DNA from: Cyanophora paradoxa CCMP329
Taxonomy: Eukaryota; Plantae; Glaucophyta
Assembly (NCBI GenBank): GCA_004431415.1
Contig: QPMI01000667.1
Span: 1-64,000, forward strand
Direction of reading: 5' to 3'
Length of the DNA: 64,000 nucleotides
The notes beneath the pieces were generated by a model that did not search any database, was not told the origin of the DNA, and saw nothing but the letters and a program-made list of their open reading frames with translations. Positions 57,307 to 64,000 of this stretch are shown here, one piece after another. A program made the position numbers and the translations under genes. Every line of letters starts with the position of its first letter. Position 1 is the stretch's first letter.

Positions 57307-57388
57307 CGGCATCCGCAGACTTCCGATCCCTCCGGCCGGCCTTGATCGGCATCCGCAGACTTCCGATCCCTCCGGCCGGCCTTGATCG
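57307..57388. repeat. 40-bp perfect tandem duplication
   Basis: cggcatccgcagacttccgatccctccggccggccttgat x2. Confidence 0.95.
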
Positions 57389-57688
57389 ATGCGAGCCCCT
57401 TGTTTAAGACAGTCGCAGTGCTTCTTGAATACACGCATCTTTGAATGCAAAGCGTCCACACACGCTGCTCCTCGCTTTGGCCCTACCACGAACTGTACTA
57501 GTACCACTAGTAGTACCACGACGTGATCCATTTTCGTGGTCCATTCCACCCACGCAACGTTCCTCGTCCTTCAATAATACGAAGAGCGTGAATGATTTTC
57601 CAATGAGCTTTTTGATTGAATGATTGTTCGACGAGCTTCTTGATTTCGAATGCATTAACAATCGAAGAGCCACCGTAGACATAAATAA

Positions 57689-60600
57689 TCAAGGGCGCAG
57701 CGGGGCGCCCCACCAGAACTTATTGCATGGGACGCACTGGAATTTGGTCCCCGGCTGGTTACCCCTCTGGCGGGCGGTTGTTAACGAAGGTGCACGCGTG
57801 CGGGCTGGGAGGGGGGCGCGCCTTGTCGTTCAGGCCCTCCTCGTAGTGCGTCGCCGGCTCGTGGCACTGCTTGCACTGCGCCCACGGCTGCGCGAGCACC
57901 CGCGGGTCCAGCGCTGCATGCTGCTGCACAGCCCGTCAGGCCCCGCGAGACGGGGGTAAGCAGGCCGAGACGCACCCCGTGCCGGCCTCCCTGCGGCTGC
58001 CGCCCGCCGCGGCCCTCGAAATTCCGAGGACCGTCGCGCTCCCGCGGGGGCGGCTCCCACTCCCGGGGGCCCCCACCGCGCTCCCGGAACCCGCCGCGCT
58101 CCTGAAGCCCGTCGCGGTCCCGTGGGCCGTCCCTCGCGGGGCGGGGCCCGGGCAGGTCCCTCGGGTGCGGGGCGAGGGGGTCCATCGGGTGGGGCCGCGC
58201 CGGCCCCTCCCGCGGGGCGTCCCGGAAGCCCGACACCTCCTCGTCCGACCCCTTGCCCTTCGCCCACGACCGCTTCCGCTCCCGCTCCCCGGCGCCCGCC
58301 GCCGCCGCCGGCCCGCCGCCGCCGGCCGCCCCGGGGCCGCTGGCGCCGCCGCGGGGCGGCGATGTCGTGCCGGGGACCGAGACGACGCTCCGGGGCTGCG
58401 GGCGCGCAGCGGGGGCCGGCGCTGACGCCAAGGCCGCCGTGGACGGGGCGGCTGGCTGGGGTGGGGCGGGCGGGGCGGCGGCGGAGCCGAAGCCGAGCCT
58501 CCTCACCGCCTCCTCGGCCTCGAGGCGCGCCGCCCGCACCCGCGGGTCGTCCGGCAGCAGCCGCGGCGGCGGCGAGGGCGAGCGCCGCCCCGCGCCCCCG
58601 CCGGCGAGGTGCCGCCCTTCGCCGGCGGCGACCGCGGCGGGCTCGCGCGGCGCGGGCTCCGTTTGCCGCGGGGAGGCGAGAAGGGCCGGCCGCCACGCGG
58701 GGCGAGGGGGGTCGAGCCCCGCGGGGGGCGAGGGGCGACCACCGCGCGGGGGCGAGCCAGGGCGGCCGCCGCGCGGTGGGGAGGGGCGGCCGCCGCGCGG
58801 TGGGGAGGGGCGGCCGCCGCGCGGAGGAGAAGCCAAGCGATTGCCGCGAGGCGGAGAGCCCGGGCGGCTGGCACGCGGGGGCGAGCCAGGCCGGACGCCG
58901 CGAGGTGGGGAGCCGGGGCGGCCGCCACGAGGCGGCGAGCCGGGCGGACCCCGCGAGGCGGCGAACCTGGGCGGCCGCCGCGCGGGGAGAAGCGAGCCGG
59001 GCGCCGCGCGGAGGCGAATTGAACCGGCCGCCGCGGGGAGGTGAGGTGGGCCGGCCGCCGCGCGGCGGGCTGCGATTACGCGGCGGGGAGAGGGCAGGCG
59101 GCCGGGGCCAAAGCGAGGGGGGCTCCGGCCTCGTGCGGGGCTCCGGCGCGGGCTGCGGCCGACAGGACCAGCGCGGGGCGGGCTCCGGCCGACAGGGCGG
59201 GGCGGGCCGCTGCTGAATCCGCCGGAGGCGCCCGGGAAGGGCAGCGCAATGCGCTTGCGGGCCGGGGAGGGGGAACGGTCGCCCCGGACGGGAGGCGAGG
59301 GCGAGCGGGGCGGCGGCGGGTGGGGAGCGGCTGCGGGGCTTGTCCGCGGGCGAGACGCGTGGCGCTCCGCGGGCGCGGGCGCCAGGCGAGCGCGAGGCGG
59401 GCCGGGCGCCGGGGCGGGCGCCTGGCGAGCGGGAGCTCCGACGGGGCGGCGAGGCGGGCCGGCGAGGCGGCGAGCGGGAGGTCCGGCGGGGGGCGGGGAG
59501 CGGCGGGGCGGAGAGCGCGGCCGCGGGGCACTGTCGCTAACGGGGGAGAGGGGGCGCTTGCGCGGGGGCGAGGGGCGCCCGGGCCGGCGGTCCCGCCTCA
59601 CGGGCGCCCTGCTCTCCTCCAGGGAGCGACCCAGCTCCTCAAGTTCCTGCGGCGACGCTTAAGTCGGCGGCAGGCGGCGGGCGGGCGGGCGAGGATCAGG
59701 CCGCGCACAGCGTCGGACAGGGCGGCGAGCTTCGCGGGGGCCGTCGTGCCGCGGGCGACGGACCACGGGAGCTCCTTGAAGCGGGGGTCCCGCAGGGCGC
59801 CCTGCAGGGCCACCAGCCGCTCCGCGTACCGCGCCCGGTCCCCGCCGGCCACGCGCCACGCCTCCGCCTCGATCGCTGTCGCGGCCTCCTCCACCTGCTT
59901 CGTCATCCCTGCCGGCCAGCGCACGGCCCCGTCAGGGCTCCTCTAGCACGCGGCGCGAGGGCGGGCGGGGGTACCGGGAACGCGGTCGTCCAGGGCATTC
60001 GCGAGGGCCTTCCGATGGGCGGCCCGCGCGGCCGCCTCGTCGCCCTCTGAGCGGCGCAGTCGGCGGCGGCGGAGCGGCGGGCCCGGCTGGCATCCGCGGC
60101 GCACCGGGCAGGGGCGAGGCTGCGGCGGCGGCGCCCGGCTTGCCGGCGGCGGCGGTTGGGGCGGCCGGGGCGGGGGCGCGGCGACGCGGGGAGGGCTCGG
60201 GGAGGGGCGAGCGGGGCCGCGTGGCGCGCCCGAGGACGGGGCCGTCGACATACTTGCGGACGACGGCTCGACAGAGGTTGTCGAGCTCCCTGTCCGGGTG
60301 CTTCAGCATCGGATCCAGCATCTCCACCAGGTTCGTGCCCTGCCGCCACCCGCCCCGCGCGTCGGCCCTCCGAGCGCCGGCGCCCCCGCGCCGCGCGGCG
60401 GGCACCTTGACGACGTCCTTCGGGACGCTCGTGTCGCGCAGCTGGGCGAGGATCGGCACGACGGCCTCCTTCAGGGCCTGCGCCGCCGTCGGCCGCCGGG
60501 CACGGCCCCGCCCCGGGGCCGGCGGGGCACAGCGCACGGGGCCCTCCAGCTTCAGCGCTGCCTCCAGCTCGTCCTTCAGGGCGAAGAAATCCGCGTGGGA

Positions 60601-61320
60601 CGCCTGCATCGCCGGCTCGGCGCTCGGCGCGGAACCGCCGGTGGGCGGGGCCGCGCGGGGCCGCGTGGGGGCGGGCCTACCGCGTCCAGGGGCACGGCGG
60701 CCGCCGCGGGGGCTTGCGGGCCAGCAGAGGCGGCGGCGATGGACTGCGACGGGGCGTCAAGGAGGGCCCGCTGCCGGGAGCGCTCCGGGGGGCGCCGGGG
60801 CTCACCCGCCGGGCCGGCTTCTGGGAGGCGCGGGGCTCCTCCTCCTCGCGGCCGGCCTGAGGAGGGGGCTCGCGGGGGCGCGGGCGCCGCGAGGGGGGGC
60901 GGGCAGCTGACCGCGAAGAGGTCCTCCTCGCCCTCGCCCTCGTAGAGGACCTCCTCGGCGTCGGCCATGCTGAGCCACTCGTCGCCCTCGGCGAGCCGCT
61001 CCGGCGGCCGCTCCTCGCTCTCCTCCAGCACGTCCTCGCCCACAGGCTCGCCCGACGACTCGAAGAAGCGCGAGACCGACTCGGACGACTCGAAGGCGCC
61101 CACGTCCGGCATCGACGCCGACGCCACCGGCGGCGGCAGCGGCACGCTCGAAGGCTCCTCGAACGCCGCGAGGTCGCCCGCGGACGACGGCAGCGCGTCC
61201 TGCGCTGCCCGCGCCTGGTGCTGCTGCTGGCTTCGGCGGAGCGAGTTGACCGAGGCCGGGGTGACGGCGACCGTTGCGGGGCGTGCGGTAGACGGGGAGA
61301 TGCTCGCTCCGGGATCATCC
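57689..61320 (-). CDS. TFIIS-like protein: TFIIS-N, TFIIS central domain, SPPR-repeat insert and a C-terminal C4 zinc ribbon lacking the catalytic DE; may continue upstream into the SAM exons
   Basis: ILAQLRDTSVPKDVVK|GTNLVEMLDPMLKHPDRELDNLCRAVVRKY (domain I-like); RKALANAL..AATAIEAEAW...RYAERLVALQGALRDPRFKEL..V.RG...PAKLAALSDA|EL (domain II-like); last two exons give QCKQC-x24-CVPCNKFW. Stop at 57689-57691. Confidence 0.8.
58620..59100 (-). repeat. Coding minisatellite of 24/27-nt units encoding GGRP(G)SPPR
   Basis: Repeated cggccgccgcgcggtggggaggg / gcgagccagg-type units; about a dozen SPPR motifs, some in shifted frames. Confidence 0.8.
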
Positions 61321-61487
61321 TGTGCAACGGAGCGAACAAGGGAACGCGACGAGGCGCCGGGGTGAGACAACAAGAGGAAGAATGCCGAGTTTAGTGATCT
61401 CTTCTTCGTTAGACGATGCGGCAGGCGACAGCCAAGGGTGATGATGGTGGAAACGAGACTGATAACGAAAAAGGATGCACGTCTCCC

Positions 61488-62146
61488 CTAGTACCACGGT
61501 CGGCGAGCGCTGGGTGGACGCCGCATGGACCGATGAACGTCGGTGCCCGGTCGAGGCGGATAAGAGTAACGCGGAAGCGTAAACGGGAGTACGACAGAGG
61601 ACGATGAGCTACGGATGGGACGGATGGGAGCAGCGCGACGTCCCCGGAGACCCGCTCTGCCACATGTGACCCCAGGCTGCAACGAACTTGCCTTTGTTGG
61701 GTTGCGAAGGACGTCTGCACACCAAGAGAAGTTAGTTTGCGATCCTGCGCAGCCGGGCCAGGAACCCCGCACCGAGGCCAGCTGTCGAGGGTGCGCCTTC
61801 CGGCTCTGACATACGGGGTGACTCGATCAGGCGGCTTCCCGCTGTCGGAATGTTCTCGTGACGAAAACGCACTCTGCTTTGCGGACTTCGCCAGCTGCCG
61901 CTCGCTGACAGTCGCAGCGGCCTTCTGGATCTTGATCTGGTGGCCGATGACCTTGATCCCCATTTCACTCATCTGATAACGCGTTAGCTAACAAAGAGGG
62001 CGCCATTCGTACGCGCGGACCATGTCTCGCGTGAGCATGGGCAGGTCATCCACCATCACTTCCTGTTCGACGAAGATCTGCGCGTACTTGTGTGCGACCG
62101 ACGCATCGAGCCCCGCCTCCTCCAGGGCCCGCCTGAGCGCGTCCAT
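61488..62146 (-). CDS. SAM-domain coding exons (separate small gene or N-terminus of the TFIIS-like gene)
   Basis: MDALRRALEEAGLDASVAHKYAQIFVEQEVMVDDLPMLTRDM|MSEMGIKVIGHQIKIQKA is a canonical SAM domain. Splicing downstream of it is unresolved. Confidence 0.75.
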
Positions 62147-62404
62147 CTTGTCGCTTGTATGTACCCCCAACCCCCAAGTTTCGCGGCAAGTACAGCAAGT
62201 AGCAAGTACTAGCGACAACTTTCGGCGCAATTAGCGGTCCCCGGTCCACGGTCCACCCGGCCGGCCGCGAACAACCCCGCCGGCCTAGGAGCCGCGCCGG
62301 CCGCGGGCTCCGATCCGCCCGTCCGGCACGCGGCTCGCGCGCTCGAGGAACAGGCTGGCGGTTCAGCGAGGACCGCGCGGCGGTTCGGCAGGCGCCTGCG
62401 GCTC

Positions 62405-63578
62405 ATGGAGATGCAGATAGGGTGCGCATGCGGCGGCAGCTAGGGTTTCGAAGGGGGCGCAACCGGCCGACGCGCACCCGCAGGGACATATGCGCATTGC
62501 CGGGGTGCAGGCAACTCGGTGCGCACCGCGCATCGTCGGCCGGGCTGCGCGCTGCGCCGGGCTCCTCCGACCCCAGCTACCTCCGCTGCCCGAGCCCCCT
62601 CCGACACCCCAGCATCCGCCGCTAATCACGAGCTGGCGCGCAGATTTCCTCCCTTTCAAATGCCCGCACTGCACGAAGAGGTACTGCTTGATCCACCGAG
62701 ACGTTTTTGCACACGACTGTCCCGAGGCGCCCGAGGAGGTCCGGATCCCCGCCGCCCCTCTCTCAATCACGGCCGCCGCGCTGACGCCCGCGCAGGCGTA
62801 CGTCGTGCCGGTCTGTCCCCTTTGCAACAAGGCGAGCCGCCCTGCCAGTGGCCCCGCTCGCCGCGCCCCCCCCCCCCCCCCCCCCCCCCCCCGCAGCCGC
62901 GCTGACCCACCGCTGCAGCCCGTCTCCTGCAGTAAAGGGGAGGTGACTTGGCCCTCCCACTCTCTCTCTCTCTCTCTTTCTAATTACGCTCCGCTGCGCT
63001 CAGGACCCCAATTCGAAAGTAGATGACCGTGCGCACTGCGCCCGCACCGCCCGTCTCGACGTTCGCCCGTAACCGGTACCCGCCCTCTACAGATATCGCG
63101 AACGGCTGTACTGTGAATGAGCCATCTCCCTACGTGAAATGCTCCCTCTCAAGCTGTAGTACTCGAGAGGTGAACCCCCGGCCGCCCTCTGCCCTCCCAG
63201 GTGCCCCTCCCTCTCCCCTGAGACGTGTGCCTGCAGCCCGTTCCGATGGTCTGCCGCCGCTGCCAGCTCCCTTTCTGTATACGGTGCGACCATCCAGGCC
63301 CTCGCAAACCCGACCCCCCGCGCCCCGCCCGAGCGAGCGGCGCGCCGCCGTGCACACGCAGGCATAGGCTCGACATGGACCACGCCTGCGTGGCGCTCCC
63401 CGTCAAGCCAGAGTCCGGGCCAGCCTCGCCGCGGCGGCTCCCCAGGACTGCCGCCTCGCCGGGGGACGAGCCGTATGAGCGCAAGGAGCGCCCATCGCCC
63501 TTCTCGGCCGCCTGCTGCCGCTGGTGCGCCTGCGGCTCCGACGGCAAGGTCGAGGCCGCCGCCTGCGCCATCATGTGA
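62405..63578 (+). CDS. AN1-type zinc-finger protein (ZFAND2/AIRAP-like) with C-terminal CaaX
   Basis: IG|DICALPGCRQL|DFLPFKCPHC..YCLIHR...HDC, VPVCPLCNK|PV, DPNSKVDD|HIANGC, second AN1 CRRCQLPFCIR|HRL..DHAC; ends in CAIM. Confidence 0.9.
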
Positions 63579-64000
63579 CCCCTGGCGCCGCCCTGGCCAT
63601 GCCGTCGCCCTCAAGCCTTCAGGGCCTCGGTGGCCGGGCTTCGTGATTTGTGGCTTCGGCCTTGCCAGTTGTAGTTTATGCTCAAGATCTAGAGAGATTT
63701 CTCCAGGCATTTGAGGTGTATTTCCATATGACTCAGTAGTAGTATTTTTCTTTAATAAATTTGAATTGCATGTGTGGTGAACTTCGAAAATTCTTTGCAT
63801 GAGTTGTGAATTCGAAGTGAATTTAGCTTAAAACTTAGTTATAGTATACGTACGCGTATGCGTTAATATGCGAGGCTTCGAGCTACTAGCTGTAGCTGCG
63901 TAGGCCACTGGGCCAGCGCTAGCACTCGAGTTCACGAGGCGTGCCGCGGCGCGGCCGGCGCCCCGGCCGCCGGGCCGCGGCCGCGGCGCCGGCGGCGGGG

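Follow-up and report, generated by a model that had tools for sequence, protein, structure and literature searches.

The window analysed here is a stretch of 64,000 nt from the glaucophyte Cyanophora paradoxa CCMP329 (GenBank assembly GCA_004431415.1, contig QPMI01000667.1, positions 1 to 64,000 of the forward strand), and all coordinates below are positions in it. On its minus strand lies a 15-exon gene (coding region 62146-57689) that is transcribed and spliced, and whose product of ~1,100 amino acids (aa) is a single, lineage-specific member of the TFIIS superfamily. In order, the protein comprises a SAM domain, an acidic region, a bundle like the N-terminal domain of TFIIS (TND, or LW domain), the TFIIS central domain (domII), ~550 aa of repeats resembling serine-arginine (SR) and arginine-glycine-glycine (RGG) proteins, and a C-terminal zinc ribbon with four cysteines (C4). 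An earlier reading of the letters by themselves (the sequence-only reading) had described the gene as a TFIIS paralogue with a catalytically dead zinc ribbon. Membership of the superfamily, based on the TND and domII folds, was upheld, but the SAM domain and the ~550-aa SR/RGG tether show that the protein is not a simple paralogue.

Gene model, splicing and frame

The joined frame, obtained by translating the RNA-supported exons, is open from the ATG at 62146 to the stop at 57691-57689 and comprises 1,099 codons with no internal stop in the window sequence. The exons, domains, terminal introns and 3' untranslated region (UTR) are as follows (Pfam assignments refer to the public gene model P0001, described below; AF2, AlphaFold2).

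62146-62021, 61972-61873, 61805-61773, 61714-61692 and 61319-60912, minus strand: exons 1 to 5
60856-60806, 60743-60681, 60603-60538, 60477-60406 and 60339-60105, minus strand: exons 6 to 10
60046-59975, 59908-59709, 59646-57976, 57923-57822 and 57766-57689, minus strand: exons 11 to 15
61877-62122, minus strand: SAM domain (aa 9-74), with one intron inside (Pfam on P0001)
60244-60603, minus strand: predicted five-helix bundle like the TND/LW domain, in three exons (AF2, VIA and Foldseek)
59614-60046, minus strand: TFIIS central domain (domII, or TFIIS-like domain, TLD) and the next helix (Pfam, AF2 and VIA)
57976-59613, minus strand: low-complexity region of ~545 aa (composition; no Pfam family)
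57924-57975, minus strand: GT-AG intron of 52 nt, phase 0 (joint 57923/57976 in X1, X3 and X4, none in X13)
57822-57923, minus strand: first ribbon exon, QHAALDPRVLAQPWAQCKQCHEPATHYEEGLNDK, with the first CxxC and a Tyr at position 7 (RNA-supported)
57767-57821, minus strand: GC-AG intron of 55 nt, phase 0, interrupting the ribbon hairpin (joint 57766/57822 in X1, X3 and X4, none in X13)
57689-57766, minus strand: second ribbon exon, RGNQPGTKFQCVPCNKFWWGAPLRP and then the stop (RNA-supported)
57400-57688, minus strand: 3' UTR, reaching at least to 57400, GC content 0.45 (RNA contigs unbroken to 57400, the end of the aligned stretch)

To establish the splicing pattern, contigs of four public runs were aligned on 57400-62300: X1, X3 and X4, which are RNA-derived (three samples from two studies), and X13, a DNA-like run. 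A contig of ~1 kb in each of X1, X3 and X4 covers 58469 to 57400 and omits exactly 57924-57975 and 57767-57821, whereas X13 is unbroken through both terminal introns and has no intron-sized skips. Since the skips occur in the three RNA runs but not in X13, the terminal joins reflect RNA splicing and not a genomic variant. The joint 57766/57822 was covered at depths of 14-22, with 102 nt on its shorter side, and GC..AG are the only boundaries that fit the 55-nt interval 57821-57767; without splicing, the ribbon exon 57923-57822 (ending in QCKQCHEPATHYEEGLNDK) reads into a stop before any second CxxC. The GC-AG intron proposed between exons 57923-57822 and 57766-57689 was therefore confirmed in X1, X3 and X4, and P0001 has the same end. 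Twelve further introns upstream were defined by the same RNA contigs, making 12 GT-AG and two GC-AG introns among the 14 with RNA support; their donors are mostly GTGCGC, GTGCGT or GCGCGC, and intron lengths in the gene are 48-77 nt with a single exception of 372 nt.

The public gene model P0001 (1,043 aa; eukprot, tig00021590_g22776.t1) was retrieved by phmmer with the 66-aa domII exon against 1.84e9 (1.84 billion) representatives, and its C-terminal joined peptide is identical to that of the 15-exon model. The two differ in that P0001 includes an 11-aa micro-exon, ATLADRGTRGD (~61480-61512), within the 372-nt GC-AG intron 61320-61691, which the RNA contigs bypass directly, and in that P0001 is without ~67 aa of the SR-like tract (~59325-59530), a tract kept by the RNA contig 59322-59645. 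These departures from the RNA could reflect alternative isoforms, or else the annotation may have worked around the frame problem described next. Searches and folds used exon sequences or P0001, and the joined 1,099-aa model was translated solely as a check of the frame.

Exon 13 encodes the low-complexity tether, which is composed of 24% Pro and 18% Arg, is rich in Ala, Gly and Ser, and contains SR-like stretches, a tandem array of the nonapeptide SPPRGGRPG and a region rich in RGG, RE and RD that adjoins the ribbon. TFIIS has a short structured linker of ~20 aa between domII and domain III; here its place is taken by ~545-560 low-complexity residues. Within this exon, seven single-base insertions distinguish the RNA contigs from the window (at 58594, 58698, 58722, 58941, 58983, 59084 and 59487, minus strand), all of them within G or C homopolymers. 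When the six insertions at 58594-59084 are applied, the frame is kept and an irregular sequence becomes a regular array of ~20 SPPRGGRPG units. Their location in homopolymers, together with the regular array that they restore, argues for homopolymer under-calls in the assembly of the window and not for decay of the gene; such under-calls would also corrupt an open reading frame (ORF)-based reading of GC-rich repeats elsewhere in the genome. At 59487, the seventh insertion moves translation into another frame, which has the look of a typical SR tract, and both frames stay open from there to ~59300; no RNA contig spans 59299-59322. The sequence-only reading had made its proposal depend on the terminal exons being spliced to the domII transcript, and the RNA joints support this; a frame unbroken between domII and the ribbon is likely, with the +1 difference at 59487 remaining.

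Domain architecture and the C-terminal ribbon

Domain I- and II-like regions had been reported upstream of the ribbon in the same gene, and both were recovered in the same transcript by Pfam, AF2, Foldseek and VIA. An AF2 single-sequence model of P0001 residues 270-510 contains two confident helical domains. The first (residues 10-88 of the model; predicted local distance difference test [pLDDT] of ~80) resembles the TND/LW bundle, with VIA Z values of 10.1 to the LEDGF TND and 8.3-8.9 to the TFIIS LW domains of T. brucei, human, Arabidopsis and yeast, although helical bundles often reach a VIA Z of up to ~13 through arrangement alone. Foldseek returned the same TND/LW entries, with matches including LEDGF, TFIIS and IWS1. 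The Pfam scan of P0001 gave no Med26/TFIIS_N match to this bundle, and its predicted identity as domain I comes from the fold. The second is domII: TFIIS_M (PF07500) matched P0001 residues 270-510 at 29.2 bits, equal to the cutoff (E = 1.3e-6; profile positions 4-95 of 114), and whole P0001 at 26 bits, and giant-virus TFIIS proteins with canonical ribbons reach merely 22-24 bits on this profile. Its model (pLDDT ~90) superposes on human TFIIS domII (3ndq) with a VIA Z of 12.9, a root-mean-square deviation of 2.3 Å and 91 of 97 residues, a score to which the same caution on helical bundles applies; other VIA matches include PHF3 domII (Z 12.8), the Bye1 TLD (Z 8.6-8.8) and TFIIS chains in RNA polymerase II (Pol II) complexes. 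The gene thus encodes a TND/LW-like bundle and a TFIIS domII, the combination that places it in the TFIIS superfamily. At the N terminus, the SAM domain exceeds the cutoffs of two families (SAM_4, PF18017, 32-37.5 bits against 23.6; SAM_1, PF00536, 31.7-36.3 bits against 23), and exon 2 by itself gave weak SAM matches. A whole-protein Pfam scan at E ≤ 10 detected neither a PHD finger nor a SPOC domain.

In the joined terminal exons, both the C-x2-C-x24-C-x2-C-x3-W spacing and, at position 7 after the second Cys, the Tyr were confirmed as first read, and P-x-T-x-F stands ahead of the third Cys. The whole protein of ~1,100 aa contains five Cys, and since four of these form the C4 motif, the pattern is not attributable to chance. 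Translation of the ribbon is supported by high GC content at third codon positions (GC3; 0.94 in 57822-57923 and 0.80 in 57689-57766) against a GC of 0.45 in the 3' UTR immediately past the stop, by the phase-0 terminal introns and by the placement of four of the five Cys in the motif. The codons AAC CAG CCG at 57760-57752 (minus strand) encode Asn-Gln-Pro (NQP), which in an ungapped comparison falls one residue off the DEP of TFIIS, in agreement with the sequence-only reading; HMMER and hhalign place NQP directly on DEP, at the cost of one insertion ahead of it and one deletion behind it. All aligners set the tip N-D-K-R-G-N-Q-P on Q-T-R-S-A-D-E-P, and the conserved Q-x-Q-T-R is absent. The tip therefore bears Lys-Arg and no Asp-Glu at the aligned positions, with one Asp three residues earlier, and AAC and CAG are each one base from codons for Asp and Glu. 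The acidic hairpin Q-T-R-S-A-D-E-P with its catalytic Asp-Glu is thus missing, and because no such pair stands at the aligned tip, stimulation of cleavage in the manner of TFIIS is not expected.

Profile membership of the ribbon in the TFIIS domain III family was then compared with that of 110 giant-virus TFIIS ribbons, found through a DNA pattern for Q-x-Q-T-R-S-A-D-E-P and used as controls. The control ribbons score 54-72 bits on PF01096 (Zn_ribbon_TFIIS), and no match to PF01096 at E ≤ 10 was obtained with any of three cuts of the C. paradoxa ribbon. Its top Pfam match was PF23549 (Zn_ribbon_GRF_2; E 0.009-0.03, 13.7-16.2 bits, profile positions 3-40 of 45), below the cutoff of 27, and PF06839 was not reported. 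Because the control ribbons themselves produce many matches of 12-25 bits to unrelated zinc-ribbon families (up to 24.8 bits), the GRF-like match lies at noise level, and a GRF-like identity was not adopted. Pfam gave nothing on the two ribbon exons separately, as expected of half domains.

More sensitive comparisons returned a modest signal. A local hidden Markov model (HMM) built from the control ribbons scored the ribbon at 6.9 bits (Cys-preserving shuffles: mean 2.1, SD 2.9; 51 of 1,000 reach it), and hhalign against an alignment of 25 control ribbons gave 21.8-22.6 with a probability of 51-59% (shuffles: mean 12.9, SD 2.9; 6 of 300 reach it). Outside the Cys scaffold, a modest likeness to TFIIS ribbons is suggested at p ~0.02-0.05 against Cys-preserving shuffles. 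The sole sequence match of the joined ribbon in the PDB was an archaeal TFS/RPB9 ribbon (1qyp, E = 0.28), with GNQP aligned on GDEP; of the single exons, exon 14 returned chance matches only and exon 15 had the same TFS ribbon as its sole match (phmmer, E = 2). In a six-frame scan of the window with the ribbon profile, the two ribbon exons ranked 2nd and 7th of 1,382 fragments and were colinear on the profile. In an ESM Atlas feature search with the ribbon, no score rose above the chance level, the best being 0.80-0.81. The weak sequence signal, the domain order and the C-terminal position together suggest that the ribbon probably descends from domain III. Of the earlier claim of a dead domain III, the loss of Asp-Glu at the aligned tip held, but the ribbon is not demonstrably domain III, given the missing PF01096 match and the modest profile signal.

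Searches for relatives returned P0001 and little else. With the 66-aa domII exon, phmmer against the 1.84e9 representatives found P0001 and one repeat protein, which was judged spurious and not a relative. The ribbon region and P0001 residues 1-510 recovered P0001 alone from an index of 5.8e9 proteins, the 164 aa ahead of the ribbon found no homologous protein, and neither the domII exon nor the ribbon picked up relatives in scans of metagenome contigs. A search for contigs that encode P0001 returned none on record.

Comparison with known factors and possible function

Compared with TFIIS itself (Dst1, TCEA1-3), the protein has the same order of TND/LW, domII and C-terminal C4 ribbon, the same C-x2-C-x24-C-x2-C-x3-W spacing, the Tyr at position 7 and P-x-T-x-F. 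It differs from TFIIS in having NQ for the catalytic DE, no Q-x-Q-T-R-S-A motif and no PF01096 match, as well as an SR/RGG-like tether of ~550 aa (~20 aa in TFIIS), an additional SAM domain and acidic region, and a length of ~1,100 aa against ~300. The C-terminal ribbon of Rpb9, a core polymerase subunit, is also a eukaryotic TFIIS-type ribbon without the catalytic DE and stays outside the pore, but it is recognised by PF01096, unlike the ribbon described here. Large Pol II-associated proteins such as Bye1, PHF3, DIDO and SPOCD1 offer a second comparison, as they contain a domII-like TLD without a catalytic domain III; for the C. paradoxa protein the link to Pol II is predicted from models. 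In contrast to that group it has a TND and a SAM domain and no detected PHD or SPOC, and its ribbon retains the full TFIIS Cys spacing at the extreme C terminus. Bye1, which is without domain III, does not stimulate cleavage, and the TLD of PHF3 competes with TFIIS, PHF3 linking transcription to RNA metabolism (PMC8526623). A recent review notes a small zinc finger like the TFIIS C terminus following the TLD in the Bye1/PHF3 group, and makes the case for a single superfamily that joins domII to modules with a role in RNA processing (PMC12139180).

Two further systems concern the ribbon tip. Archaeal TFS4 of Sulfolobus is a natural cleavage-factor paralogue whose ribbon tip has lost two acidic residues and gained basic ones, and which inhibits RNA polymerase via the secondary channel (PMC5715097). 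The tip of the C. paradoxa ribbon may be comparable in sequence, having Lys-Arg and lacking the acidic pair at the aligned positions, although an Asp lies three residues earlier. TFS4, however, is archaeal and small, consisting of two ribbons, and its hairpin is shortened (KKK), whereas the eukaryotic protein here has several domains and a hairpin of full length (DKRGNQ) on a very long tether. The engineered TFIIS D290A/E291A (TFIISmut) blocks intrinsic cleavage and is dominant-negative (PMC2994637). It shares the loss of the acidic pair from an otherwise TFIIS-like scaffold, but its hairpin is otherwise intact and its linker native, and both of these are remodelled here.

The reading that we favour, and to which we assign about an even chance, is that the protein is a cleavage-incompetent adaptor that docks on Pol II, functionally like PHF3 and Bye1, with a tail of RNA-processing type and a degenerate domain III. 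Judging from its fold, domII would dock on the Rpb1 jaw/funnel site used by TFIIS, and the TND may recruit elongation-factor motifs. The protein would then occupy the TFIIS site without stimulating transcript cleavage, in the manner of Bye1 and PHF3, while the long SR/RGG tail and the ribbon, most likely a degenerate descendant of domain III, might engage nascent RNA or RNA-processing factors. Given that the ribbon hangs on a flexible tether of ~550 aa and not on a short structured linker, pore insertion would happen occasionally at best and would not be the main mode of action. Several points weigh against this reading. Binding to Pol II is deduced from fold alone, and the VIA scores that support the fold carry the caveat given above. 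PF01096 does not match the ribbon, and an AF2 model of the ribbon by itself reached a pLDDT of 53, with no fold search made with it. The +1 difference at 59487 leaves proof of frame continuity incomplete: a compensating change is expected near 59300-59330 but was not seen, and the contigs break there. As no orthologues were found among the 1.84e9 representatives, the 5.8e9-protein index or the metagenome contigs, there is also no sign that purifying selection acts on the ribbon or NQP.

Three alternatives were weighed against the adaptor. The ribbon could, along the lines of the mechanism suggested in the sequence-only reading, enter the Pol II pore like domain III and, for want of Asp-Glu, block both TFIIS-stimulated and intrinsic cleavage and stabilise paused or backtracked complexes, which would make the protein a natural counterpart of TFIIS D290A/E291A and of TFS4. 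The aligned tip, with Lys opposite the Arg of TFIIS, the single-base codon changes from Asp to Asn and from Glu to Gln, and the domII upstream of the ribbon are all compatible with such a blocker. Inhibition by TFS4 depends on basic tip residues (PMC5715097), of which the tip here has Lys-Arg, and intrinsic cleavage is inhibited by TFIIS deprived of its acidic pair, which acts as a dominant-negative in yeast (PMC2994637). We nevertheless regard this as unlikely: the low-complexity linker of ~550 aa contrasts with the short one that threads the TFIIS ribbon into the pore, the hairpin is one residue out of register on each strand and without Q-x-Q-T-R, PF01096 gives no match, and constitutive expression of such a factor would be expected to be toxic. 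It is because of the ~550-residue tether and the tail resembling SR/RGG RNA-processing proteins that an adaptor is favoured over a dedicated pore blocker. An extension in which a TFIIS descendant keeps backtracked or paused complexes uncleaved with its Asn-Gln ribbon in the pore, and its SR/RGG tail ties them to the spliceosome, so enforcing splicing-coupled pauses in a genome whose closely packed, short introns have weak donors (often GC-AG), appears decidedly improbable.

Alternatively, the C4 ribbon may be an independent one (GRF-like or other) that, together with the RGG/SR region, binds nascent RNA or single-stranded DNA, the protein being an SR-like, Pol II-associated RNA-processing factor whose TFIIS-like spacing is coincidental. 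The top Pfam match (PF23549, at 14.7-16.2 bits, with none to PF01096) would fit this, as would the RGG/RE-rich sequence just upstream, the SPPRGGRPG and SR-like tracts typical of RNA-binding and RNA-processing proteins, and a TFIIS-specific signal no stronger than p ~0.02-0.05. Yet the GRF_2 score is far under the 27-bit cutoff and inside the noise of genuine TFIIS ribbons, the only PDB sequence match is a TFS-type ribbon, and the ribbon follows TND and domII, as in TFIIS, at the extreme C terminus and has the exact x24 spacing, P-x-T-x-F and a Trp four residues past the fourth Cys; coincidence of this kind seems to us improbable. A third possibility is that the ribbon and domII belong to different polypeptides or that the gene is decaying, so that frameshifts in the repeats end the domII frame early and the terminal exons are untranslated remnants. 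Taken together, the seven RNA insertions in 58594-59487 give an exon length of 1 mod 3 and a stop near 59076, and 59299-59322 is spanned by no contig. Against this, all insertions lie in G/C homopolymers and six restore the frame and the regular nonapeptide array, as would result from assembly error; both frames are open between 59487 and ~59300; the ribbon GC3 of 0.94 and 0.80 gives way to a GC of 0.45 exactly after the stop; four of the five Cys fall in the C4 pattern; and both terminal introns are precisely spliced in phase 0. We consider this third possibility very unlikely, and a pseudogene reading was not adopted, on the grounds that the RNA-genome differences are homopolymer insertions that restore the repeat array.

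Competitors for the TFIIS site are known in two forms, namely eukaryotic proteins without domain III (Bye1, PHF3) and an archaeal protein with a remodelled ribbon tip (TFS4). If the ribbon descends from domain III, the C. paradoxa gene would represent a eukaryotic case in which the ribbon is kept and the catalytic carboxylates are exchanged for amides; Pol II-docking domains would, in addition, be fused to an SR/RGG-type tail and a SAM domain. Such a protein would offer a natural reagent with which to ask if eukaryotes make physiological use of pore occupancy without cleavage, and if such occupancy is coupled to RNA processing. Its present value is that of a testable lead from a single lineage-specific gene.

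Other features of the window

An Rfam scan of the window gave no match. Between 16000 and 26000 lies an island of lower GC (0.53-0.58) flanked by sequence of 0.70-0.80 GC, and the four longest ORFs there are without a Pfam match. Just beyond the end of the stretch aligned with the run contigs, in or after the 3' UTR of the TFIIS-superfamily gene, a 40-nt unit (gatcaaggccggccggagggatcggaagtctgcggatgcc, minus strand) is tandemly duplicated at 57308-57387. On the plus strand at 62490-63600, the ORFs of the divergent neighbour contain two Cys/His motifs (e.g., CPHCTKRYCLIHRDVFAHDC) that by eye resemble AN1-type zinc fingers.

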